Shown here in pieces: positions 1 through 14,902 of a stretch of 14,902 bases of DNA. The notes under the pieces are model-generated. The model made no database searches. It was not told where the DNA came from and worked only from the letters and a program-made list of their open reading frames with translations. The DNA is from Selaginella moellendorffii (lineage: Eukaryota; Plantae; Lycopodiophyta): assembly GCF_000143415.4 (NCBI RefSeq), contig NW_003314463.1, positions 11,885 through 26,786 of the forward strand, given 5' to 3'. The position numbers were made by a program, and so were the translations under genes. Each line of letters opens with the position of its first letter. Position 1 is the first letter of the stretch.

Positions 1-823
1 TTCCATGGGCTTGACACTTCGTTCATCAGCCATTCGTATATTAAATGGGGTGGGTTGTATTGAGCCTAGGCTTAATTCTTTAGAAATTCTCTCTTCTAGA
101 ATATTTACACTTAAGCCACTATTGATAAAAGTTCTAGATAATAAATTCTTGCCAATCTTTATATTAATTGTAGGAACTTCATCATCACAATCCCCTAGCT
201 CAATTACAATGGCTGTATATAGGATTAAAGTTTATTCCTTTTTAGGTGAAAACTCTTTGAGCAATGCAACTCTAAGATAAAGTGCTATAGTGATAAGTTA
301 GCCTAGAGTGAGTGTAATTTCAACATTTAAAATGTCTTTTATTGCCTTCTTCTCATCCTTGCCATCTAACTTTAGTATAGGATTTTCCTTTTGTGCTAAT
401 GGTAAATTTGTGTCAGCCTGTAAAGGCATGAGACTCTTTGTGTTAAAATCATTATTTTCTAAATTAACTTATGGTTGCAAGTTTTGGAGTTATTGAGTGA
501 TTTCTGCACTGAATTTTTATTTTTTTTTGGCGCTATTGAGAGTTGGGGATGATTTCTACTTTATCATCACTCCTTTCATCTTGGCTTTCAAATTGAACCC
601 TTCTTTGTTGGGCTTTGGTTATGACACAGAGGCTAGGTAACTCTTCTATATCTGACCATTCTACCTTAACATGCCTAGCTGCAGATTGTGTATCCTTAGG
701 AGGCGTATCATTCTTTCTTGATGATTCAGCTTGATTGTATAGCCTAGGATAGCAAGTAGGAGTTTTAACTTGATCATACTTTTTTGGCATTTTATAATCT
801 CCATAGAGCGTTCCCAACAACAT
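1..823 (-). mobile_element. Degenerate Ty3/gypsy gag-protease fragment (family different from the elements at 5560-14902); continues off the left edge
   Basis: Minus-strand translation: ...LPSLCVITKAQQRRVQF... (533-823 ORF), a frameshift near the T-run at ~515-528, then ...KDILNVEITLTLG*LITIALYLR...DDEVPTINIKIGKNLLSRTFINSGLSVNILEERISKELSLGSIQPTPFNIRMADERSVKPME. This matches the retropepsin pattern (LIDSGSSVNI...PTPFxLRMADxRxVKPxG) with the catalytic D changed to N at 121-123, plus in-frame stops. The upstream boundary is uncertain. Confidence 0.8.
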
Positions 824-975
824 GATATGGTGCTAGTAAACTGATATGAACACATCATGTAGCTGGGATAACTCATCTGGAAGATCCAACTTATAGGATA
901 CATCACCAACTCGCTTCAATACCTGATAGGGCCTGACATGGTTTGGTTCATGATGAGAGTGGAGAACACAAGAAT

Positions 976-1312
976 GGCTACCACAGTTACTTGAGATCCT
1001 GTACTCAAGCCGAGAGGATCATCAGAGACACCCTGAGCAAGCAGACTAATTGGGACAAGACGATACCAGCAGGAGCTCTTCGCTTGCACTTCCACGACTG
1101 TTTCGTCGACAGGAATAGCTTTGCAAGATTTAAATTCTGATCTGGTAACTTTGCTGTTCTTCAGGGCTGTGATGGATTGGTTCTTCTCGACTCAACTCCC
1201 ACCAATGGAAGTAAAGTGTAAAAATTGTCACTTCATGTCTGCCAAGAGCTTCATTTTTTTTTATCCCTGTGCTGACACTCTCACTATAGCTGCCAGAGAT
1301 TCAACCGTCATG
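976..1312 (+). pseudogene. Class III secretory peroxidase fragment (exons 1-2 only, damaged)
   Basis: SCTQAERIIRDTLSKQTNWDKTIPAGALRLHFHDCFV (distal-His motif), an intron at the canonical position with a defective donor and a CAG acceptor at 1162-1164, then GCDGLVLLDSTPTNGS, an unrelated insert with a stop, and CADTLTIAARDSTVM followed by a GTAAGT donor at 1313. Later exons are not recognisable. Confidence 0.9.
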
Positions 1313-1818
1313 GTAAGTTTAGCATCTTTTTAGAAACGCTGGATCAAGTTCTAAGATGGAGAGGAAAGAACGTCAGTTCTCATTAAACAAACCCTGGATA
1401 TTTCGATCTGCTCCAAAACTGTAAAACAGCTGTAAATCTCAAAATCTTAAGATTGTACTCCACATAGACCACTGCAAGAATACAACACTCATATATTCTC
1501 TGCCTTTCAATTCTTTAACGATAGAAAACTGCAACAGAATGACATGGCATCATCATCATCAAATCAAACTCCCTTATTTAAACGTGCTATTGGCATATGG
1601 CATCCGGCGTCTTTTATTCCATTTTTAGAATATTATTTCTGAATATGCTTATAATCTAATGGCTGAAATTCAAAAACTTCAAATAGATGGCATGGATGAA
1701 GTGCTAAAGGGGTGGCAACGCTTCAATTAATGACGCTCCAAATCAAGTGAAATTTTTTAGGGCAATCGGGCAAATTCATACAGGACAAGCTGCCTTTGGT
1801 GGGCGTGTGCATACCCTT

Positions 1819-1941
1819 TGCGAAAGCCAGGATCGTGGATTGTCATCGCTATTCGCGACACACGCACCTTGCCTGGGACAGGTCAAAGGTGGACAGTCTG
1901 AAGAACACAAGCTCCAGCTCCATGACGACTTCCCCACTGTT
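1819..1941 (-). pseudogene. F-box motif remnant
   Basis: Minus frame not shown in the ORF track: SGEVVMELELVFFRLSTFDLSQARCVCRE*R*QSTILAFA, which resembles the F-box consensus (IxxRLxxxDLxRARxVCRxWR). The Trp position is TAG at 1849-1851, with TGA at 1843-1845. Confidence 0.6.
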
Positions 1942-2029
1942 CGCCACATTTTCTGTGCCATACAGTCTTGTTGAAGGAAGGATATTTATACTCACTCAGT
2001 GGTCATGTCATTGTTTGAAATGACTTTGG

Positions 2030-2307
2030 AAGATCAAGAGACTGCGATGGTCTTTCATAGATTATTGCAAACCAAAGGTGCAATAAAACCTTTGTCGTTG
2101 TTTTGTCTCTAAACATTTTTGCTGTGTGCAGGCCGGATCCTCGCCCCTGTATTTCCCATCCGGCCAGATTCCAAAGTCTCTGCAATCCACAAACGTTCTC
2201 CAGGAGCTGGCTGTGAGGTGGAAGAAGCGACGCATCCACAAACTCCATGGTTTCATGTGACTCCATGAACACGTCAAGGATGTGTCCAAGCTTGCTAAGT
2301 GCAACAT
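2030..2307 (+). pseudogene. Unidentified spliced gene fragment
   Basis: AAG|GTGCAA donor near 2078 and a pyrimidine tract ending TGCAG at ~2131 define a ~54-nt intron. The joined frame reads KRLRWSFIDYCKPK/AGSSPLYFPSGQIPKSLQSTNVLQELAVRWKKRRIHKLHGFM*LHEHVKD. Family not recognised. Confidence 0.3.
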
Positions 2308-3130
2308 GCTGCATGCGCTATTGGTGAACAACCGATCAAGGTAGATTTAAAATTCTTTACTTTTTTCTGAAGACAATTTGCAGGGACTGCTGAATCCTGC
2401 AGCTATGGCTAGGCTGGCGCTTGGAGAAGCTTTGACGAACCTTGTTTGGGCTAAGGTACTCTCATCTTAATTGTGTTTACACACCTTATGATCTGTTTAA
2501 CTTTGCAGGTTGAACTTGATTCCGAAATATATGTACAATCCTGCTGTTGCTCTTCGTGACACTGTGATCGAGCTTGAGGTTGCAATAGAAGGTGGAAAGG
2601 ACAGCTTGTCAATGGCTGTTCAAGCAGGTGGTGAAACTGTCAAGGCACTTGCGAATCTCGTCATTAGTCGTATGTGACTTGTCCAGACATTACACTCATC
2701 GTCACCCCTGATTTGAAGGTACTGAAATTCATATCCTTTCATTCAAATCTGATTACTTGCTTCTTCCAGATTGGAGAGGAAGTTGTTCTTTTGTTGGGAC
2801 TGGCAAAGGTCGTCTAGGAGGTTTTGCACTGGCCCAATCTTTTGATCAGGTCAGACAAACTGTGGTTTTCTTTCCTTGCTAGCTTCCACTATGCGGATTA
2901 GTGATACTTGCCTGGACGTTGAAATATTTAAAACGTGCCTTCAATGCGACACAGGTGATCATGTCATTCATCGGTTTTCTTTTTTAAACAATCTGGATTT
3001 TTCTGCGGACAGGACCTTATTGGCAAGAAACTTATTTCTGCAGGACATGATATCAGAGTTATAGTTTCATTGCTATAGTTTCATAGTTTCATTGTCTTTG
3101 CGAGAAATTATGGCATTGAAGTAGACATTC
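2308..3130 (+). pseudogene. purL: Phosphoribosylformylglycinamidine (FGAM) synthase internal fragment, multi-exon, frameshifted and deleted
   Basis: ACAIGEQPIK / GLLNPAAMARLALGEALTNLVWAK / MYNPAVALRDTVIELEVAIEGGKDSLSMAVQAGGETVKALANLVIS-YVTCPDITLIVTPDLK / RLGGFALAQSFDQ / LKRAFNATQ / DLIGKKLISAGHDIS / FARNYGIEVDI. GT-AG introns at 2341-2383, 2456-2508 and 2719-2769. The SGNWMYAAK block is missing. May extend weakly to ~3375 (RDA*...AFQ). Confidence 0.92.
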
Positions 3131-3386
3131 GGACACTCTAAGCATATCCATGGGAGGAGCTATTGCTACAGAAGTCGGGGATGAGACCACTGAACCATTA
3201 GACTCAGAAACAGATCAAGCATCAACTTAAATGCAGTTAAAGACGTGTTCACAACCTTGAGCTTCAGGTAACCTCTATCCCTGCTTCATTGTAAGAGAGC
3301 GCCAGTGCTGAGAATTTCTTCTGTAACTTTTCCACCCTATACACCAGGGATGCATGAAGAACTGGGCATTCCAAGCTTTTTACACT

Positions 3387-3526
3387 ATACAGAAAGGAAT
3401 CATACTATTCAACCAGAAGCCTTGCATGAGTATTGATTTCCTTGTAAAAGCCAAGAAGTGGAGAAAATTCCTGAAGAGGTTGCCAGGTTCCTCCTGAGTG
3501 CCACAGGTCTCAACAGAGGCAGGATC
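3387..3526 (+). pseudogene. BIG-type ARF guanine-nucleotide exchange factor fragment: start of the Sec7 domain
   Basis: IQKGIILFNQKPCMSIDFLVKAKK-(frameshift)-VEKIPEEVARFLLSATGLNRGRI matches the Sec7 N-terminus of plant BIG proteins (LQxGIxLFNxKPxKGIxFL...PEEIAxFLxxxxGLNKxxIG). Confidence 0.85.
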
Positions 3527-3852
3527 CGAGTTGGCAACGTAATCTGGCTGGAAAATTATGGTTATGGTAACAAAGTTTTGAGTAATTTTGGACAAGGTAT
3601 CAATGCTTTATCAATTACAGATTTTTATTACTGCTGCAACAGATAGAGATAGCGGCATTATGCATCTTGCATTTGAACTGGTGGAGAAAGTTGCCAGAAA
3701 TAACTTTCAACACATTACTGAAACCGAGAACACAATATTCACAGACTGTGAATGGCATTCTTGCGTTCATAAGAAAACAAGTTTAGTGACGATATCAGCC
3801 TCAACACTCTCGCTTTTCTGCGTTTTTGCGCCTTGGTGAAGGAGAGCTCAGT
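3527..3852 (+). pseudogene. BIG-type ARF-GEF fragment: HDS region downstream of Sec7
   Basis: RVGNV-SGWKIMVM, intron, then IFITAATDRDSGIMHLAFELVEKVARNNFQHITETENTIFTDC-GILAF-NKFSDDISLNTLAFLRFCA-GEGEL. Matches BIG NVKSGWK...FTTAA...AFExxEKI...ITETETTTFTDC...DISLNAIAFLRFCA. Several frameshifts. Confidence 0.9.
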
Positions 3853-4340
3853 ACTTTCAGATAGTAACAAACATCAAGTTGTTCTGTGCGACTTCATTGG
3901 AATCATCAAAAGACAGCAATCAGTGATTTTGAGAAGTAAGTTTGTTATTACTCTCGTTACCACAGGCTGACGATTCATTCAGATGAGATTGTCAGTAAAT
4001 TGTCATAACAACCAACGAGTTTATATGCCCAAGCAGACGTGTTTGCTTATGGCAAGGTCATTAAGGAATCTCTCACAGTCTAAATGTTTCTTTCTTCATA
4101 TCCCCGAGGAACCTGAGCAGAAGGTGTTCTGGATTATTAGATTCTTCATAGAGTAAGTTCCTGAAGGTTCATTCCTTGCAGCTCTACAGTTACCTTGTTC
4201 TTGCAGACTTTCACAGGCAACCGTCCATCCCTAAGTGTGCTGTATTATAGATCCAGATTACAAAAGATCAAATCCAGATTTTGATTTGATACCAAGTGAT
4301 GTTATCAAATTATCATCTATGTGCTGTTATCTTCAAAGAT
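3853..4340 (+). pseudogene. Unidentified multi-exon gene remnant
   Basis: Repeated + strand splice signals (GTAAGT at 3936 and 4153; CACAG at 3961-3965; TTGCAG at 4201-4206 closing a 54-nt intron) flanking short exon-like blocks with stops. Product not recognised. Confidence 0.35.
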
Positions 4341-5726
4341 GTAGGCAATAACAGCATCAATGCAGGGAAGAATGCTGTATCTGCCATGTGTATAAGTTTT
4401 GGAAAGCATTGCCATAGTTGCTCAAGAAAGAGAAAGAGATTGAAAAACACTAGAGGAAAAACTCATGCATATGTACCATCATTCCCGCCCAGCAAGTGTC
4501 TGGTAAATCTGAGAGAAAAGCTTTCACACTCCCACTGGGACCAAGTATGGAAGTAAAAAAACCAATTTTTTTTTATGATCTAGAGCTACATGCTAACGAT
4601 GAAATTCACGCCTTGCTGTGTCAGACAAATGACCCAACCTGCATAGTATCAAACTTGTAAGAAATGAGTACTACTTACATGAACAACCCCTGAAAATCAG
4701 TGTTGGCAAGGATGCATTCATGTCCTAGGCAATCTATGAGAAGATCCTCTGGGGTTTCAATCCCACAAACAGCAACAACAACCAAACAACCAACTTGAGT
4801 TCCTTCAACTCAATCACGAAGTAGACTGTCTCTCAGTTTCTCCGAGTGACCAAGTCAGCTTGCAGGGAGACTTATGATGCTACAAATATTAAACCTGGTG
4901 AATCAATCCTTTTAAGAGTGCCTTGGCTGGGAATTGAGTAAGCATGTGCATGGCCTTGCCACCAGTTTTCACCATCTATGCTCAGGTTACTACAAGCAAA
5001 AGCTTTGTTAGCTTCTTCTCAGAGATGAAAGAAAAACTCGAGCTACCTTCTGCAGTTCCATAAGCTAAGGAGTCCTTTCTGGTACATCCAAGCACATGAA
5101 GTTCCTTGGGTAAAAAATTGATAGCATAGACTGATTTTGTTTTTGAGTTGTATTTGTTATTATCACAGATTCAACAGCTGAAAGGGTGTTAAATCTTATC
5201 AAGTGGTGGGCTGTTCAATGAGCATGATAAAAATTAAAAATAGTAGAGAAGAAGGAGAAACCAAATGTCATACAAATAGCAGATAGCTTAAAAAAATAAA
5301 AGTTAGAATTTATGCTAGGGTCCTCCCATGATAAATTTAAATGATGATGTAAAACAAAATTAAAAATTTCACAATAATCTTAATAAATTTAAATAATACA
5401 GCTTTTTAATTATTAATAACGTAGCTACTGAATAGTTATATTACTATTGCAGTAAAATTAATGGCATGCATTGGAAATTGGGATTAGAGAAGTAACAAAA
5501 AATATGGAATTTTGTCACACATGATGACATTTTGACCCTTCTATGACAATACAAGTTTATGTGAGACACAAAATCCCTAGGCCCCAAAGTGGAGCCGGAA
5601 AGGGTGCCACGTGGTAGTGGCCGAAGCGAAAGCCAAACAAGCATAAAACGTTTGGACTAAAAGCTCCGACTTGGAAGGTCGAGAGCGGGAGTGGAACTCC
5701 CAACAAAGAGCTCGAGGAGCAAGCAC

Positions 5727-6226
5727 GAGGCGGACCCGAGATGGAGTCCGAGGCGGACCCGAGTTGGAGTCCGAGATGGACCCGAAGTAGAGTCCGAGAT
5801 GGACCCGAAGTGGAGTCCGATATGGAGTCCGAAGTGGAGTCCGAGATGGAGTCCGATATGAAGTCCAAAGTGGAGTCCGAGATGGAGTCCGAAGTGGAGT
5901 CCGAAGTGGAGTCCGAGATGGAGTCCGATATGGAGTCCGAGATGGACCCGAAGTGGAGTCCGATATGGAGTCCGAGATGGACCCGAAGTGGAGTTCGATA
6001 TGGAGTCCGAGATGGAGTCTGAGATGGACCCGAAGTGGAGTCCGATATGGAGTCCGAGATGGAGTCTGAGATGGAGTCCGAGATGGACCCGAAGTGGAGT
6101 CCGATATGGAGTCCGAGATGGAGTCCGAGACGGACCCGAGATGGAGTCCGAGATGGACCCGAGATGGAGTCCGAGATGGACCCGAGATGGAGTCCGAGAT
6201 GGAGTCCGAGATGGAACCGAGACCGG

Positions 6227-6263
<37 letters not shown>

Positions 6264-6290
6264 TCCGAGTCCGAGTCCGAGTCCGAGTCC
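5727..6290 (+). repeat. LTR minisatellite, copy A: ~42 units of 12/11 bp followed by (GAGACC)n(GAGTCC)n
   Basis: Units GAGATGGAGTCC, GAAGTGGAGTCC, GATATGGAGTCC and GAGATGGACCC, then 12 hexamers at 6219-6290. Confidence 0.97.
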
Positions 6291-6339
6291 GAATACTAAT
6301 ACAGGCAGTTGGGTGAAAGCCCAAAGCAATCGTCCCCCA

Positions 6340-6359
6340 GGGGGGGGGGGGGGGGGGGG
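6340..6359 (+). repeat. G20 homopolymer, specific to LTR A
   Basis: 20 consecutive G; the other LTRs have (T/A)GGGGGTTT(T)GGTGAG here. Confidence 0.9.
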
Positions 6360-6368
6360 TTCCAAAAG

Positions 6369-6376
6369 TATAGTAG
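6369..6376 (+). promoter_or_regulatory. Candidate LTR TATA-like box
   Basis: CCAAAAGTATAGTA is conserved in all three LTRs just downstream of the minisatellite and is a short AT-rich island in a GC-rich context. Function is inferred only. Confidence 0.35.
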
Positions 6377-8178
6377 GGAGAGTGTGGGGGTTGGAGCCCA
6401 GTGGAGCCAGTTTGGCCAGGAAAGGCCAGTTTGGCCCAGGAAGGCCAGACCCAGTGTTGGGTGATGAGCTGACCACTGGGAAGTCCAAGACTAGAGTGAA
6501 CACGGACCGACAAGCGGGGTAGCTTGGTGAAGTGTTCAAGAGCCGGCTCTAGTTCCCCCGGGAGATCGACTGGCTGATGCTCCCAGTCCAAGTGTGGGTG
6601 GCACTACCTACTTGGATACCAGGCGTGGCTCAACGGAACCTCGCTCTAAGCTCATGACTAGAGCACCCAAGGGCAGAAGGCGGGGAGAGTACCCAGGTGG
6701 CTCGCGTAAGGCCACGGTGTTCCGAAATGTTGTCCCAAAGGCCCAGACTGTGGAAAGGAAGAGGAGCAGTCCTCTGGGGTAGTGACCAAGGACACAGTCG
6801 TGTGGTGAGGAAGTCCCAGAGGACCGTGGGACTTAGTGGTCGGGCCTGTGGGCCTCGATCCAGTGGCAGTGTTGGCAAACACGGCCAGGGGTAGAAAGGG
6901 ACTTAGGGGAGACTGACAGAGGGATACTGGGGAAGGCTATTCCCCTTGTCGGTGGGCATCCTAAGGATGCTAAAGAGTGGATCTGAGATGACCACTCATG
7001 GATGGTTTGCCTAGTCTTGGAGAGCCAAGACTGTGATACAAGTGGTATTGGTCTACCAGTGTGGCAAAGGTGATTGGGCATTGCCTTAGTGTAACAGGTT
7101 GCCGTGTCGGTGGTACTTTTGAGTGTCGGACATGGGATCGGACACGTGGAGCACTTGGACCAAGTGCAAATGTTGAGTGGCATGGTGTAAGCGACTAAAT
7201 TTTCCATTCTACTTTAGTCACTTAACCACACCTCTGACCACTTGGAGGAGTCTCATTCACCACCTCCATAAGTCCAATCCAGGACTTGGGACTTGCTAGC
7301 CCCGAGAATGGCATCCATGCCACTTAACTTTTGCACTTGGTCCATGTGCTCCACGTGTCCGATCCCATGACCGACACTCAAAGGTACCACCGACATAGCA
7401 GCCCATCACGCTAAGGCCATGCCCAATCACCTTTGCCACACTGGTAGTCCAATACCACTTGCATCACCGTCTTGGCTCTCCAAGACTAGGCAAACCATCC
7501 GTGAGAGGTCATCTCAGATCCACTCCTTAGCATCCTTAGGATGCCCACCAACAAGGGGAATAACCTTCCCCAATATCCCTCTGTCAGTTCCCACTAAGTC
7601 CCTTTTTGCCCCTGGCCGTGTTTGCCAACACTGCCACTGGATCGAGACCCACAGGCCCGACCACTAAGTCCCACGGTCCTCTGGGACTTCCTCACCACAC
7701 GACTGTGTCCTTGGTCACTGCCCCAGAGGACTGTTCCTCTTCCTTTCCACAGTCTGGGCCTTCGGGACAACATTTCGGAACACCGTGGCCTTACGCGAGC
7801 CACCTGGGTACTCTCCTCGCCTTTCGCCTTTAGGTGCTCTAGCCATGGGCTTAGAGCGGGTTCCGTTGAGCCACACCAGGTATCCAAGTAGGTAGTGCCA
7901 CCCACACTTGGACTGGGAGCATCGGCCAGTCGATCTCCCGGGGGAACTAGAGCCGGCTCTTGAACACTTCACCAAGCTACCCCGCTTGTCGGTCTGTGTT
8001 CACTCTAGTCTTGGACTTCCCAGTGGGCAGCTCATCACCCAACACTGGGTCCGGCCTTCCTGGGCCAAACTGGCCTTTCCTGGCCAAACTGGCTCCACTG
8101 CAGTCCTCCCCCTACTATACTTTTGGAGCTCACCAAAACCCCCAGGGTCTGCGAGACGAACGCTTTGGGCTTTCACCC

Positions 8179-8626
8179 NNNNNNNNNNNNNNNNNNNNNN
8201 NNNNNNNNNNNNNNNNNNNNNNNNNNNNNNNNNNNNNNNNNNNNNNNNNNNNNNNNNNNNNNNNNNNNNNNNNNNNNNNNNNNNNNNNNNNNNNNNNNNN
8301 NNNNNNNNNNNNNNNNNNNNNNNNNNNNNNNNNNNNNNNNNNNNNNNNNNNNNNNNNNNNNNNNNNNNNNNNNNNNNNNNNNNNNNNNNNNNNNNNNNNN
8401 NNNNNNNNNNNNNNNNNNNNNNNNNNNNNNNNNNNNNNNNNNNNNNNNNNNNNNNNNNNNNNNNNNNNNNNNNNNNNNNNNNNNNNNNNNNNNNNNNNNN
8501 NNNNNNNNNNNNNNNNNNNNNNNNNNNNNNNNNNNNNNNNNNNNNNNNNNNNNNNNNNNNNNNNNNNNNNNNNNNNNNNNNNNNNNNNNNNNNNNNNNNN
8601 NNNNNNNNNNNNNNNNNNNNNNNNNN
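8179..8626. other. Assembly gap (448 N) inside the LTR minisatellite
   Basis: The N run begins where the hexamer array starts in the other copies. Confidence 1.
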
Positions 8627-9044
8627 TCCATCTCGGACTCCATCTCGGACTCCATCTCGGGTCCATCTCGGACTCCATCTCGGACTCCATTTCGGGTCCA
8701 TCTTGGGTCCACCTCGGACTCCATCTCGGACTCCATCTCGGACTCCATCTCGGGTCCATCTCGGACTCCACTTCGGACTCCAACTCGGGTCCATCTCGGG
8801 TCCACCTCGGACTCCACTTCGGACTCCATCTCGGACTCCATCTCGGGTCCATCTCGGACTCCACTTCGGACTCCAACTCGGGTCCATCTCGGGTCCACCT
8901 CGGACTCCATCTCGGACTCCATCTCGGGTCCATCTCGGACTCCACTTCGGACTCCAACTCGGGTCCATCTCGGACTCCACTTCGGACTCCAACTCGGGTC
9001 CATCTCGGACTCCACTTCGGACTCCAACTCGGGTCCATCTCGGA
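8627..9044 (-). repeat. LTR minisatellite, 3' LTR of B (continues into the gap)
   Basis: Same units in reverse complement; 35-bp higher-order repeat CATCTCGGACTCCACTTCGGACTCCAACTCGGGTC x3 at 8931-9035. Confidence 0.97.
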
Positions 9045-9276
9045 CACTCCCACGTGTCATGTGTTGGTCCTTTTGGGTCCCTTTTTGGAGCCTCGCCTTT
9101 TGCTCGCTTCGTGCTCGTTCCTCGAGCACTTCGTTGGGAGTTCCACTCCCGCTCTTGACATTTCAAGTCGGAGCTTTTGGTCCAAACGTGTTACGCTCGT
9201 TTGGCTCTCGCTTCGGCCACTACCAGGTGGCGCCCTTCCAGCTCCACTTTGGGGCCTAGGGATTTTGTGTCTCACA

Positions 9277-9290
9277 ACTCCACCACCCAT
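9277..9290 (-). promoter_or_regulatory. Polypurine tract
   Basis: Minus strand ATGGGTGGTGGAGT directly before TGTGAG of the 3' LTR. Confidence 0.75.
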
Positions 9291-9380
9291 AGACGAAGTT
9301 CGATATCCTCATCGAACGGTAAACCATTTTGTAAAGTAACACTCGCGTGTGTTACCATTTCCATCCTTGGCACCTAGCCA

Positions 9381-9511
9381 ATATTTGTCAATGGTTTGAC
9401 ATTGAAGGCTCACCATGCCTTCTCCATATTCGTCAATGGTTTAACATTGAAGGCTCACCATGCCTTTTGCATAGGCCTCCATGGTTTGACACCAAAGGCT
9501 CACCATGCCTT
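9381..9511. repeat. 45-bp tandem repeat, ~3 copies, upstream of the PPT
   Basis: ATGGTTT(G/A)ACA..(G/A)AAGGCTCACCATGCCTT starts at 9391, 9436 and 9481. Confidence 0.9.
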
Positions 9512-10019
9512 GCCTATCCTCTAAGGAGGGTAGTCTCTCCAACTTAGAGATTGATTGGACCACATGTAATGGTTCTCTCCTTTTATTGGTTTAGTCCTCG
9601 CTAAATCTCTTAGAGACCCTTCTCTAAGTCAATCCCACTACTCCTTCTCGAGTAGTCTCGATTTCCATCGATATAACCTTTGCACTTTGGAACTTTGAAT
9701 TTTGACTTCTTGGAGTCAATTTCCTAGGTGTCTCCGACACCTTGCCTTGCACCTTTTTGTGCAACTCCACTTCCCATCCTAGGAAGTTCTCTACTCGAGG
9801 GCACCATCATCCTCTTTTCTATTTCGTGCCAAAGTTCCAGTTATCATACTTTGTGCTAGGGCTGTTCATGGCCCTATCATTTGGCTACCTTACCGCTCCC
9901 TCCCTTGGAGCTTCCACTTTCGCCAAATCGGAGCATTTCGGAATCCCTCCTTGGAAACACACTTCCTTTCCCGCAACTTGTTAGCGTCCAACACATTAGT
10001 GTTCCTCGCCTAACTTTGT

Positions 10020-10510
10020 CACTTGGATTCCTTCCAAGGGATTCCACGGCCCTATCTTGGCCACTCATCTTTTGCTCCTATCCGTTGATTGTTGCACCAA
10101 GCAACATCGAATCTCTACCTCCCTTCTTGAGGTATTGTTTCGGTTCCATAGCAAAGACTCTTCTTTGCCAAGTCCGGAGGATGTTCACCCCTAGTACGTC
10201 TCTTTAGCATCTTCTGCTATGGGCTCTATCCACGGCCCAACTTCGTGACCCTCCCATGGGTCTTTTATAGAGACTACTTTCCTCGGACTCACTATGCCAT
10301 CGCACGGACATAGTTTATTTCCCTTAGGTGCTCTTCCCACTTGGTCATCACGACCAAGCCACACCACCTTAAACAATTCAATTTCAACATTTTGAACCAG
10401 GAACTTCATTCCTTAGCCAACCAAGGACCTTGTCCTTATCTGGCCATAAGATCACCTAGTGATCTCACCTTGGCACCTTAACAGAGTTGCCAAGAGGTAC
10501 TTGGTCTTCT
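10020..10510 (-). other. Possible chromodomain remnants downstream of integrase (chromovirus ancestry)
   Basis: Weak fragments KYLL, KFLVQ...KVVWLG, PWEGHEVGPWIEP and PWNPLEGI resemble YLVKWKG...TWEP; the position after GPY/F fits. Too degenerate to be sure. Confidence 0.3.
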
Positions 10511-10541
10511 AGACCTCCAAGTTGTTGACTATAACCCCGGG

Positions 10542-10816
10542 GGCATCCCCCACACTTGGCGGTGCACCCAAGCCAGCCCTTACGGCCAAGGGTTCATAGC
10601 AACTGAGATTAGGTGTCCCCATCTCACTCACCACGACCTTGGTGCCACTTGCACCAAAGCGTTCAAGTTAGATATGCTAAGCTTTCACACTAAGCAATCT
10701 AACCGTGCATCACGACTCCGAGGCATCCCTCGCTTGGCGGTGTGCCCAAACCAGTCTCCCCACTGAGAGTCCATGACCACCGAAATATGAGTGTCCTCAT
10801 ATTCCAAACCATCACC
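10542..10816. repeat. Degenerate ~100-bp duplication with ~180-bp period
   Basis: GGCATCCCCCACACTTGGCGGTGCACCCAAGCCAG...GTGTCCCCAT (from 10542) versus GGCATCCCTCGCTTGGCGGTGTGCCCAAACCAG...GTGTCCTCAT (from 10722). Confidence 0.7.
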
Positions 10817-10821
10817 ACGCC

Positions 10822-10933
10822 CTAGTGATTTGGGACTCGAACCCAAGCACTAGAGGGTCGGGACTCGAACCCAACCTCCGTATATGCATCTACGGACGGC
10901 ATCACACAAGATGCCTAGCGTGACTCCCCACGC
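10822..10933 (-). ncRNA. Putative tRNA-like structured module: five abutting hairpins, two with a TTCGAGT T-loop
   Basis: Minus strand: GCGTG-gggagt-CACGC, GGCATC-ttgtgt-GATGCC, TCCGTA-gatgcata-TACGGA, GGTTGGG-ttcgagt-CCCGACC, CTAGTGcTTGGG-ttcgagt-CCCAAatCACTAG, with spacers of 0-2 nt. Confidence 0.5.
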
Positions 10934-10949
10934 CGGTGCACCAACTTAT

Positions 10950-12030
10950 TTTTAAAGCGCGCTACAGATCACAGCTTAGGAACCTAGTTCCTCCACATTG
11001 CCAAGTCCTCTCACTTGACATGTCTGTGATCATGCATGGACTCCTCCATGCTCGGCCCCATGGCCCACCCTTTTTGAAGTTATCACCTTCAACTAGGGTA
11101 TTTGTTCCCCCGACGTGCCAATCTCGCTTGGCAAGTCCTCCGACCACTGTAACATGGTTCCTGCATAAGCGTGAAAGTCCTTGACCATCGACTTTCGTTC
11201 AAAGCCCTCTCTTTGAACACTCGGGAACTACTTCCCTAACCTTGATAGCCTTGCCTCATGGCAAGCTTCAAGACCACGCTTCTGCTGCGCCACTCTGATT
11301 TCGCGCGTTCCATGAACCATTTACACTTGGCCTTTCTAGGTACTAAGCTACCTAGAATCGTCTTTGGGAACCTTGAAGGAACTCTGTCCCTCAGCTTGCT
11401 AAGGCCTCCCTTTTGCAAGCCTTCCAAATGCCACATAGTCTAACATGGACAATTCCATAACTTAGACTCTTCATGGCATCACGGTTGCTAGCGGCAACAC
11501 CCTCGAGCCCCCACTTGATTCTCCACTCCCAACTGGCATAACCAACCTTGGTTATGCCCTTCGATTTCTATGGTTCAGTTCCATCCCAATACTACTTGCC
11601 TTTGGCTTCACACCTTTCCTTCGGTCATTCTCCTCCAGATCAGGAGGATAGCTTTGCACTTTCTATCATGCCTTAGCAAGTATTCTTAGGGATGAACTTA
11701 CCCAATAGCCCAGGGAGTGGTTCCTCAATCCGGGTATGCTCACCTTATAATCCCACACACTGGGATTACATTGTTGCTTATGGGCCTTTACATGCCCAGC
11801 ACTAGCCTTGCCAAAATTCCATTTTTGGCTTTGTCCAACTCGGGTAGACAGTCCTCTCCTGTCTCCGCAACCTTGGACATTTGGATAGCACCTTCTATCT
11901 ATCATTCGCTAGGGACTTAGTCCCTTGGGCTTTATCCATTGCCCTCGCGACATCAAACACCACTTTCTGGTGTTCTAGAGTGTTCGGGTGTCCCAATGAT
12001 GGCTTTCTTGACAATGAGTATTTCCTTTTA
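10950..12030 (-). pseudogene. Heavily decayed, internally deleted Ty3/gypsy pol (RT C-terminal half, RNase H traces, integrase core and GPY/F region)
   Basis: Residual motifs in gypsy order on the minus strand: EILIV (~12010-12024, cf. DDILIYS), LEHQKVVFDV (11949-11978), K-EFWQ..GHV (~11790-11830), GY-KFIP (~11690-11710, cf. GYYRRFIP), WHLEG (~11420-11435), RFPKTILGSLVPR (~11335-11375, cf. GLPxxIVSDRDPRF), DGQ (11181-11189), QWSEDLP (~11130-11150), VEGD...AWRSPCMITDMSSERTW (~11000-11095, cf. RWxGPYxI). Confidence 0.7.
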
Positions 12031-13405
12031 TGACATTGACTTACTATATCGCAACACAAGCAACTTATCCCCCGTAAGGGTATATGCGACTTCCCTATGC
12101 TATTAAGAAGTCTTGGGTAGCTACCTTCTACCCGTTTAACTAGTTATTTTGCACCTCTTGCTTAGTTGCCTCATAGTTGTCAAGTCCTACAACTCATTGC
12201 TTGGTGCTTTCACACCTCCATCATTATCTGGGTCACCACACTCCAACTGCATGCTTTGCAGCTTAGGCTATGCCATTCCCATTTCCATTGGGATTCCTTT
12301 GGCAAGGGGTTCTCATGAACCCACCAACATAACCTCAAGGTATCACACCTTGGCACATTTGGTGTCTCCACACCATCGGCTCCACGAGCTTACCTCTATG
12401 ACACTTCTTCTTTGTGTCTAAGTCTTTGCCAAGACCAATACCACTCTTTCTCATGCCAACCATCTGTTAGCACTGCATCATAGAGGTCACACACAACTTT
12501 GTGTCAAAGTTGTTTTCTTTTTGGGAACACCTTTCCCACGACTTTAGCATGGCACATTTTGCCATCGATGAGATACCCTCTGTTCTCATCCTTGGATCCT
12601 ATAATCCCCCCCCCCATCCTTTGTAAGGTACAACACACCTTAGTCCAAATGCTTCCATCAGTCCTTTTAGGACCGTCCTTTGACTCTACTTGAGTCATCC
12701 AGCAGTTTTGGACTTGGTTAATCCACAGACCCGTAAGGTCCTACTTATGAGGCACTAGCTCACTGGAATACACTTCTTGCATTCCTGTCCCACTCAAAAG
12801 GACTATTTTCACAAGTGTTACTCTGACACTTGATTTTGTTCTCTGGGGGCAACCTTTGCCCCTTAGGACTACTTGTCCATGTGATGAGAATACCACTCAT
12901 CTCTAAGTACACCCCCCAACTCCTTGGGTTGTTCCAGCATTTATTAAAGGTAGCCCCGGCTACCATTTCAAGGACTTGAGTCCTCTTTCGTATTTGACCT
13001 CCCACGGTCATTACTTCTGGTCTCACATTCATGAGCACCAACCTCAACTATATGAGGATAATCTTATGACTCCTTTATTGTTTTGGAGTCTCTATCTTTC
13101 CCGTGATCCTAACTATAGTTGTTTACCACAACTACCTTAGCCAACTTGCTGAGACAAATGCTCATCCAGATCACATCCTCAACTCAATGAGGAAAACCTT
13201 GCACTGTTCCCAAGATCCCAAAGTCGTTCCATTATTGGCCCTTTTCTATCCACCACCTTGTCTACAAGTTCACACATGAACTGTAATGGAGAGCCATGTC
13301 TTCCTGACTTGCTACTCCTCAAGGATAGGCCCACTCCTCAGACCTTCCAATGCCAACACTAGTGGTGATATACTTGAGCACCAATAAAAGTCGGATTAAG
13401 GAACA

Positions 13406-13417
13406 GCTCCGATACCA
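13406..13417 (-). promoter_or_regulatory. Primer-binding site, initiator tRNA-Met type
   Basis: Minus strand TGGTATCGGAGC, 3 nt after the LTR end ...CTTACA. The canonical plant tRNAiMet PBS is TGGTATCAGAGC; the A>G change gives a G-U pair. Confidence 0.9.
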
Positions 13418-14298
13418 AATTGTAAGCGACTAATTTTTCCATTCTACTTTAGTCACTTAACCACACCTCCGACCACTTGGAGGAGTCTCATTCACAACCT
13501 CCATAAGTCCAATCCAGGACTTGGGATTTGCTAGCCCCGAGAATGGCATCCATGCCACTCAACATTTGCACTTGGTCCAAGTGCTCCACGTGTCCGATCC
13601 CATGACCGACACTCAAAAGTACCACCGATATGGCAGCCCGTTACGCTAAGGCCATGCCCAATCACCTTTGCCACACTGGTAGTCCATTACCACTTGCATC
13701 ACAGTCTTGGCTCTCCAGGACTAGGCAAACCCTCCGTGAGTGGTCATCTCAGATCCACTCCTTAGCATCCTTAGGATGCCCACCGACAAGGGGAATAGCT
13801 TTCCCCAATATCCCTCTATCAGTCCCCACTAAGTCCCTTTCTGCCCCTGGCCGTGTTTGCCAACACTGCCACTGGATCGAGACCCACAGGCCCGACCACT
13901 AAGTCCCATAGTCCTCTGGGACTTCCTCACCACACGACTGTGTCCTTGGTCACTACCCCAGAGGACTGCTCCTCTTCCTTTCCATAGTCTGGGCCTTTGG
14001 GACAACATTTCGGAACACCGTGGCCCTACGCGGGCCTCATGGGTACTCTCCCTGCCTTTCGCCTTTGGGTGCTCTAGCCATGGGGTTAGAGCGAGGTTCC
14101 GTTGAGCCACACCAGGTATCCAAGTAGGTAGTGCCACCCACACTTGGACTGGGAGCATCGGCCAGTTGATCTCCCGGGGGAACTAGAGCCGGCTCTTGAA
14201 CACTTCACCAAGCTACCCCGCTTGTCAGTCCGTGTTCACTCTAGTCTTGGACTTCCCAGTGGGCAGTTCCTCACCCAACACTGGGTCCGGCCTTCCTG

Positions 14299-14348
14299 GG
14301 CCAAACTGGCCTTTCCTGGCCAAACTGGCCTTTCCTGGCCAAACTGGC
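14299..14348. repeat. 19-bp tandem unit GGCCAAACTGGCCTTTCCT with one more copy than in the other two LTRs
   Basis: Three GGCCAAACTGGC here versus two at ~8062-8093 and ~6406-6436. Confidence 0.85.
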
Positions 14349-14438
14349 TCCACTGCAGTCCTCCCCCTTACTATACTTTTGGAGCTCACCAAACCCCCTA
14401 GGGTCTGGGAGACGAACGCTTTGGGCTTTCACCCTCTC

Positions 14439-14803
14439 AGACTCGGACTCGGACTCGGACTCGGACTTGGACTCGGGCTCGGTCTCGGCCTTGGCCCTTG
14501 TCTCGGTCTCGGTCCCGGTCTCGGTCTCGGTCTCGATCCCGGTCTCGGTCTCGGTCTCGGTCCCGGTCTCGGTCTCGACCTCGGACTCCATCTCGGGTCC
14601 TTCTCGGACTCCATCTCGGACTCCGTCTCGGTCCATCTCAGACTCCATCTCGGACTCCATCTCGGGTCCATCTCGGAATCCATCTCGGGTCCATCTCGGA
14701 CTCCGTCTCGGTCCATCTCGGACTCCGTCTCGGGTCCATCTTGGACTCCAATTCGGGTCCATCTCGGACTCCAACTCGGGTCCGCCTCGGACTCCATCTC
14801 GGA
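14439..14803 (-). repeat. LTR minisatellite, 5' LTR of B
   Basis: About 140 bp of GGACTC/GGTCTC hexamers, then ~220 bp of 12/11/10-bp units. Confidence 0.97.
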
Positions 14804-14902
14804 CACTTCCATGTGTCATGTGTTGGTCCTTTTTGGGTCCCTTTTTGGAGCCTTTCTTATTGGTTGTCTCGTGCTTGCTCCTCGAGCACTTTGTTGGGAG
14901 TG

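Follow-up and report, generated by a model that had tools for sequence, protein, structure and literature searches.

A 14,902-nucleotide stretch of the genome of the lycophyte Selaginella moellendorffii (contig NW_003314463.1, positions 11,885 to 26,786; hereafter the window) very probably carries, judged on anatomy and classification alone, a minus-strand non-autonomous long terminal repeat (LTR) retrotransposon of the LARD type. Its 4144-nt interior is evenly tiled by about 107 short hairpins with perfect stems of 5-10 bp, roughly one every 39 nt, and the excess extends into the LTRs. This excess is real and cannot be chance. To explain it, we favour the view that the hairpins were retained by selection on the genomic RNA, a reading to which we give a probability of about one half.

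An LTR retrotransposon nested in its own family

Composition profile and direct reading divide the window into an AT-richer zone (1-5559), in which gene and transposon fragments are scattered, and a zone that belongs to one repeat family (5560-14902). The second zone holds the following features.

13421-14902, minus strand: 5' LTR (LTR-c), truncated where the window stops and finishing in ...GCTTACA
13406-13417, minus strand: primer binding site (PBS) TGGTATCGGAGC, by direct reading, 3 nt past the end of the 5' LTR
9277-13420, minus strand: internal domain, non-coding, 4144 nt, from the hairpin and coding searches
9381-9515, minus strand: three copies of a 45-nt unit, from a repeat search of the interior, with two small hairpins per unit
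9277-9288, minus strand: polypurine tract (PPT) GGGTGGTGGAGT, by direct reading, immediately upstream of the 3' LTR
7186-9276, minus strand: 3' LTR (LTR-b), running from TGTGAGAC to GCTTACA, from the LTR alignment
5560-7185, plus strand: third LTR copy (LTR-a), without its last ~128 nt, from the LTR alignment
5741-6300, 8627-9045 and 14406-14800: tandem arrays of an 11/12-mer within the LTRs, from direct reading and the LTR alignment

The element thus has the build of an LTR retrotransposon: terminal direct repeats bounded by TG...CA (TGTGAGAC...GCTTACA when the LTR is read on the minus strand), a PBS and a PPT. The PBS TGGTATCGGAGC agrees at 11 of 12 positions with that of the initiator tRNA-Met, which we take to be TGGTATCAGAGC. 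Between the LTRs lies an interior of several kb without gag, pol or env coding capacity, whose purine-rich strand is the transcript. An earlier note on this DNA, made from the letters alone, had singled out an interval that coincides exactly with this domain, 9277-13420. Because the interior is non-coding and has no traceable coding ancestry, we class the element as a LARD-type non-autonomous retrotransposon. The earlier note had likewise seen in it a LARD-type element with a highly structured non-coding interior, and this part of its description stands: PBS and PPT are intact, and LTR-b and LTR-c, as direct repeats, are 95.4% identical over 991 shared columns.

The 4.6% divergence between these two LTRs is transition-biased and implies a per-site decay of ~2.3% since insertion. 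LTR-a, which is ~92.5% identical to each of them, is inverted and stands tail-to-tail with the 3' LTR of the element. On its 3' side the element thus adjoins an inverted, truncated LTR of its own family, which places it inside the LTR of another copy; the remainder of this host copy should lie beyond 14902. That the lineage kept replicating, as the earlier note supposed, follows from this insertion into a relative, and it presumably did so in trans. A 448-N assembly gap (8179-8626) falls within LTR-b, adjoining its tandem array, and the true length of the LTR is uncertain for this reason.

Short perfect hairpins tile the element

We defined a hairpin as a perfect Watson-Crick stem closing a loop of 3-10 nt and searched 9277-13420 exhaustively. 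The search returned 23 stems of at least 7 bp: all 20 hairpins of this size that the earlier note had listed by eye are present, with the positions and stem lengths that it gave, and three more join them (10151-10168; 10784-10803, 8 bp; 12493-12513, 9 bp). In 100 dinucleotide shuffles of the interior the corresponding number was 1.42 +/- 1.1, with a maximum of 4. Stems of at least 6 bp (57 against 6.1 +/- 2.5) and of at least 5 bp (107 against 24.9 +/- 4.6) follow the same pattern, and the density of hairpins, 4 to 16 times the dinucleotide-shuffle counts, lies well above chance, as had been claimed. The longest class, stems of at least 8 bp, has 7 members against 0.39 in shuffles.

The baseline stayed the same in shuffles preserving 3-lets, 4-lets or the purine/pyrimidine pattern, and in shuffles of 20-40-nt blocks. 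Alternating purine and pyrimidine tracts, k-mer bias and local composition are rejected as trivial causes by these matching shuffles. Moreover, the excess is confined to one kind of symmetry. For arms of at least 6 nt in the same geometry we counted 57 inverted repeats against 6 mirror, 10 direct and 12 complement repeats, the latter three being at background. Could the tiling nevertheless be an accident, or an artefact of composition or assembly? A strong skew in composition and the nearby assembly gap might both invite this explanation. Its probability is negligible, given that no shuffle under six null models reached the observed counts, that the other repeat symmetries are at background, that the hairpins are common to three independently assembled LTR copies and that the LTR divergence has a natural, transition-biased spectrum.

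Enrichment also depends sharply on the length of the loop. It reaches 10-19x at 3-7 nt and is ~1x both at 0-1 nt and at 13 nt or more, a dependence which argues for the fold-back geometry of a single strand and against double-stranded palindromes. A feature of double-stranded DNA, for example palindromic protein-binding sites or cruciforms acting on the integrated copy, would account for stems that are perfectly Watson-Crick and symmetric between the strands. However, palindromes with 0-1-nt spacers are not enriched (0 vs 0.87; 1 vs 0.93), the stem sequences are diverse and share no recurring motif, and the LTR stems have decayed since insertion without evident maintenance (5 stem changes in LTR-b and LTR-c together). 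We find such a feature hardly credible as the cause of the tiling.

The excess does not stop at the ends of the interior. In the control region 1-5500 observed and shuffled counts are 53 vs 45 (stems of at least 5 bp), 17 vs 12 (at least 6 bp) and 9 vs 3.6 (at least 7 bp), and a segment-by-segment scan gave no hairpin enrichment in 1-5559 or in the LTR tandem arrays. In each of the three LTR copies the parts outside the tandem array are enriched 2.7-5x in stems of at least 5 bp, with 22 vs 7.4 in the unique part of LTR-c (13421-14405) and 18 vs 6.7 in that of LTR-b (7186-8178). The hairpin excess thus characterises the element as a whole. The earlier note had presented the tiling as a feature of the interior; this remains true insofar as the interior is the strongest part and 1-5500 is low, but the unique LTR parts are enriched as well.

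Two local observations belong to this census. The segment 4001-5000, with 8 hairpins of at least 6 bp against 2.5 expected, is the sole flanking segment above expectation. In LTR-a, a run of about 20 G occupies 6340-6360, where LTR-b and LTR-c have short mixed sequence; an apparent hairpin surplus specific to LTR-a was rejected because this run was counted at several loop sizes.

Predicted folding energies tell the interior and the control apart. In 100-nt windows the interior has a mean z of -2.1 on both strands, with 51% of windows below -2, against a mean of -0.1 in 1-5500. Two 300-nt pieces of the interior folded with z = -6.35 and -2.90, against +0.33 for a control piece. On this windowed measure, one of the checks that the earlier note proposed, the interior is the more stable.

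The hairpins on the transcript strand

Hairpins, loops included, take up 39% of the interior, and ~28% of its bases lie in perfect stems. Their median spacing is 29 nt and their mean total length 17 nt. Among the 107 stems, 50 have 5 bp, 34 have 6, 16 have 7, four have 8, two have 9 and one has 10; loops are mostly 4-7 nt long. Self-BLAST of the interior returned only the 45-nt tandem, so the hairpins are not repeats of a single unit. Neither arm is systematically the purine-rich one.

The loops are a different matter. On the transcript strand they consist of 38% G, 34% A, 20% U and 7.9% C, this last value standing against 17.5% in the loops of shuffled-sequence hairpins and 14.5% in the 5-nt flanks (Fisher p = 1e-4). 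In fact, G is present in 96 of the 107 loops and C is absent from 72; the commonest loop is GGAG, and the loops on stems of at least 7 bp are 80% purine.

Pairing directly outside the stems is 0.24-0.29, against a baseline of 0.24. Stems with one mismatch and at least 7 pairs are ~4x enriched (13 vs 3.4), and their mismatches show no bias towards wobble. The small excess of broken stems is consistent with a decay of ~2.3%, and the pattern fits stems that were essentially perfect and discrete when the element inserted. The first ~140 nt past the PBS (13283-13420, minus strand) contain no perfect hairpin of at least 5 bp.

The interior shows no remnant of pol

The earlier note had seen in the interior a dead pol gene, of gypsy ancestry and still traceable, rewritten end to end into hairpins. 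The 4.1-kb length and the purine-rich sense strand would fit a gag-pol ancestor, and non-autonomous elements frequently descend from autonomous ones. The searches speak against it. Pfam gave no match at E <= 1 for the 30 longest stop-to-stop pieces that the interior offers (20 sense, 10 from the other strand; the longest open piece has 115 aa), and period-3 signal is absent across its 300-nt windows (mean z -0.08, none above 3). Both procedures worked on positive controls elsewhere in the window: the first detects a decayed Tf2-1-type gypsy integrase SH3 domain at 836-1018 on the minus strand (E = 5.7e-12) as well as a peroxidase and an FGAR-amidotransferase fragment, and the second finds codon periodicity at 1-450. 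Word-indexed searches of protein databases with open reading frames (ORFs) from the interior, from the unique LTR parts and from the repeat regions of the LTRs gave no family copy and one match, which was spurious; an exhaustive HMMER protein search with a 124-aa LTR ORF was empty.

The LTRs, which were never pol, are also rich in hairpins, so that the decay of a pol gene did not produce them. It is highly improbable that the interior is a decayed pol gene, turned into hairpins from end to end and still recognisable as pol. The assumed gypsy ancestry finds no support either, as the interior holds no remnant of reverse transcriptase, RNase H, integrase, protease or gag. A PBS for the initiator tRNA-Met is found in copia and gypsy lineages alike, and for this reason the superfamily cannot be assigned.

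Selection on the RNA or fold-back copying?

What kept, or made, the hairpins? Exact-pattern DNA scans found no family copy in metagenome contigs, where the patterns were the junction of LTR and PBS and a 24-mer that the three LTRs share, nor in viral contigs or prokaryote genomes. The protein and DNA collections searched evidently do not hold the repeats of this plant, and our comparison within the family consists of the three LTR copies and the internal duplications. Within this comparison the hairpins are shared among copies, as the earlier note required of a genuine structure: most LTR hairpins are common to all three LTRs and are therefore older than the insertion of this copy.

Labelling the LTR hairpin columns by the majority of the three copies at each column, we found substitutions at 8 of 181 stem positions, 16 of 90 loop positions and 61 of 594 others. 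Small as these counts are, stems differ from non-stems (8/181 vs 77/684, p = 0.005). The difference is strongest in LTR-a (3/181 vs 41/684, p = 0.02), the copy that belongs to another insertion and whose changes accumulated while the family was replicating. It is not significant for the changes that followed insertion in LTR-b and LTR-c (5/181 vs 36/684).

A second line of evidence comes from an internal duplication:

10500-10880, minus strand: old duplication within the interior, its copies 178 nt apart (10549->10727, 10606->10784), from self-comparison

Homology is statistically secure over ~35 nt of this duplication, and the copies are collinear beyond. The 8-bp stem at 10784-10803 and its paralogue at 10606-10626 differ by two clean G-C/A-T swaps, and pairing is kept through both (GAGATGGG[GACA]CCTAATCTC vs AATATGAG[GACA]CTCATATT). 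Another paralogous pair, GGGGG[ATG]CCCCC vs CGAGG[GATG]CCTCG, shows one compensatory swap. In total there are two to three compensatory pairs, all within this one old duplication. Together, and within a small sample, the stem and loop rates and the compensated paralogues suggest structure-preserving evolution.

We thus favour selection on the genomic RNA because loop composition is strand-specific, because stems are more conserved than loops and because the paralogues are compensated; the ceiling on stem length and the near-perfection of the stems at insertion count in the same direction. In fact, no stem exceeds 10 bp, and enrichment is lacking for loops of 0-1 nt. A symmetric DNA process would not predict loops that are poor in C and rich in G on one strand.

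The main alternative is neutral. Over many rounds of reverse transcription or DNA replication, a nascent strand would fold back on itself, copy a few bases and return, and sequence free of coding constraint would thereby acquire hairpins without function. Template-switch mutations of this kind reportedly create or perfect hairpins, as Loytynoja and Goldman are said to have described in 2017 and Monttinen and Loytynoja in PNAS in 2022. A single such event yields both perfect short inverted repeats and apparently compensatory changes, as seen here. Several of our observations suit it well: the stems are strictly Watson-Crick and end abruptly, the optimum at 3-7-nt loops fits fold-back priming as well as RNA folding, and the excess is present in all non-coding parts, LTRs included. 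Three substitutions specific to LTR-c and clustered in 20 nt, at ~14023-14037, also fit: they turn GTGGC[9-nt loop]GCCAC into GGCCC[GCGTA]GGGCC. This re-registering of a hairpin is of the kind that template switching would be expected to produce, although it is not significant alone.

Set against these points are several that neutral copying does not predict. Template switching leaves the strand-specific composition of the loops unexplained, and it does not predict that stems should change more slowly than loops among the LTR copies. The duplicated hairpin differs between paralogues in both arms, where a template switch would have rewritten one, and the arms show none of the polarity that a new copy always made in the same arm would leave. 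The numbers are demanding, too. Template switches are reportedly rare and scattered, and here there are 26 hairpins per kb; by our own estimate, ~28% of bases in stems would require a template-switch rate about one third of the point-substitution rate, far above what has been reported. We regard the neutral origin as possible, but rather unlikely.

Selection on the RNA faces difficulties of its own, and we gather here what weighs against it. Selection at the RNA level would usually tolerate G-U wobble pairs. Wobble is not preferred here on the transcript strand, where stem ends show 22 GU against 12 AC (~18 vs 15 expected), and its lack of preference is what fold-back copying would give. The same is true of the excess stability, which is equal on both strands (z of -2.09 vs -2.05). 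The LTR substitution test rests on small counts, the compensatory evidence comes from two hairpins in one duplication that is secure over ~35 nt only, and the three LTR copies with the internal duplications are too few sequences for formal covariation. Finally, the functions considered below, packaging and evasion of silencing, are both inferred.

Relatives, precedents and possible functions

LARDs are LTR elements whose non-coding core, several kb long, is conserved and is said to specify conserved RNA secondary structures (PMC7215508); Sukkula of the Triticeae is an example (Kalendar et al. 2004, cited in PMC7215508), and LARDs and TRIMs form one size continuum (PMC13570524). Like Sukkula and other LARDs, our element has an LTR pair, a PBS, a PPT and a multi-kb interior without gag or pol, and is presumed to be mobilised in trans. 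Its LTRs, at ~2.1 kb, are shorter than those of Sukkula, which measure ~4.4 kb. A literature search that did not cover the original 2004 LARD paper turned up no account of uniform tiling by ~100 perfect 5-10 bp hairpins with G/A loops that reaches into the LTRs. The earlier note knew of no described case; within this search that stands for the uniform micro-hairpin tiling, and it fails for its second half, that the tiling lies over a traceable pol.

TRIM and Cassandra elements, for which the RNA fold has been proposed to matter (PMC7215508), are likewise LTR retrotransposons that are non-autonomous and non-coding. In Cassandra, however, the two LTRs form a 'super-hairpin' with a 5S domain, whereas our element carries a chain of local micro-hairpins and matches neither 5S nor any other Rfam family.

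A further likeness is to retroviral packaging signals, which are also short stem-loops that expose G-rich loops. The packaging signals SL1-SL4 of HIV-1 present GGAG or GGUG loops that are bound by nucleocapsid, and the tetraloop of SL3 is GGAG, the commonest loop of our element. The differences are in number and place: retroviruses place a few such hairpins in their 5' leader, whereas here there are ~100 across the whole RNA, and the first ~140 nt after the PBS are free of them.

Building on selection as the favoured explanation, we envision that the genomic RNA would fold about every 40 nt into a short, perfect and independent hairpin. The lineage would have been copied in trans by the proteins of a partner while selection on its RNA kept these hairpins in place. 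By analogy with the retroviral signals, loops that expose G on short stems might then offer multivalent sites to the Gag or nucleocapsid of the partner. Alternatively, a locally folded RNA whose stems are too short for Dicer might be hard to reach for small-RNA-guided slicing. Both functions are plausible, and present evidence cannot separate them. Tentatively, then, the ~100 hairpins might form a 'beads-on-a-string' RNA over the whole length of the element, which would act as a nucleocapsid decoy (a packaging signal as long as the genome), as a shield from cleavage guided by small RNAs, or in both ways.

Other features of the window

The part of the window to the left of the repeat family is a mosaic of fragments, of which those of peroxidase, FGAR-AT and gypsy are plant-like:

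1-231, minus strand: protease-like stretch, by eye only, with no Pfam hit
836-1018, minus strand: decayed gypsy integrase SH3 domain, Pfam E = 5.7e-12
937-1137, plus strand: class III peroxidase fragment with the motif LRLHFHDCFV, overlapping the gypsy fragment on the opposite strand
2501-2674, plus strand: FGAR-amidotransferase (FGAR-AT) fragment, from a domain search

The tandem arrays of the LTRs are built of the units GAGATGGAGTCC and GAGATGGACCC, which grade into GAGACC and GAGTCC repeats, and their length varies between copies. They give sub-threshold Rfam matches to MIR2933 (30.5 bits, where the gathering score is 70) and yield long spurious ORFs in several frames.

Within the interior, the minus strand of 10820-10935 has a resemblance to tRNA. 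An 11-mer like a T-loop, GGTTCGAGTCC, occurs twice in a 28-nt tandem, and before it hairpins resembling a D arm, an anticodon arm and a long variable arm follow one another in tRNA order. Neither ARAGORN nor Rfam called a tRNA there, so that the likeness is unconfirmed; the region may be a captured tRNA or SINE remnant, or a coincidence. ARAGORN found 0 tRNA genes in all, Rfam 15 had no interior match at E <= 1, and a focused scan of 10760-10980 brought up nothing relevant.

What the chain would mean

Non-autonomous LTR retrotransposons account for a large part of plant genomes, and how their non-coding RNAs compete for the proteins of a partner is little understood. In this copy the signal is unusually clean and can be quantified: a micro-hairpin chain spans the element and has a strand-specific loop composition. 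If the hairpins are neutral, no denser trace of fold-back template switching by reverse transcriptase would be known, and mutation bias alone could build RNA structure. If they are selected, they would point to a concrete mechanism of packaging or of silencing evasion, and a chain of beads on a string would be a design principle not described before for LTR retrotransposons.

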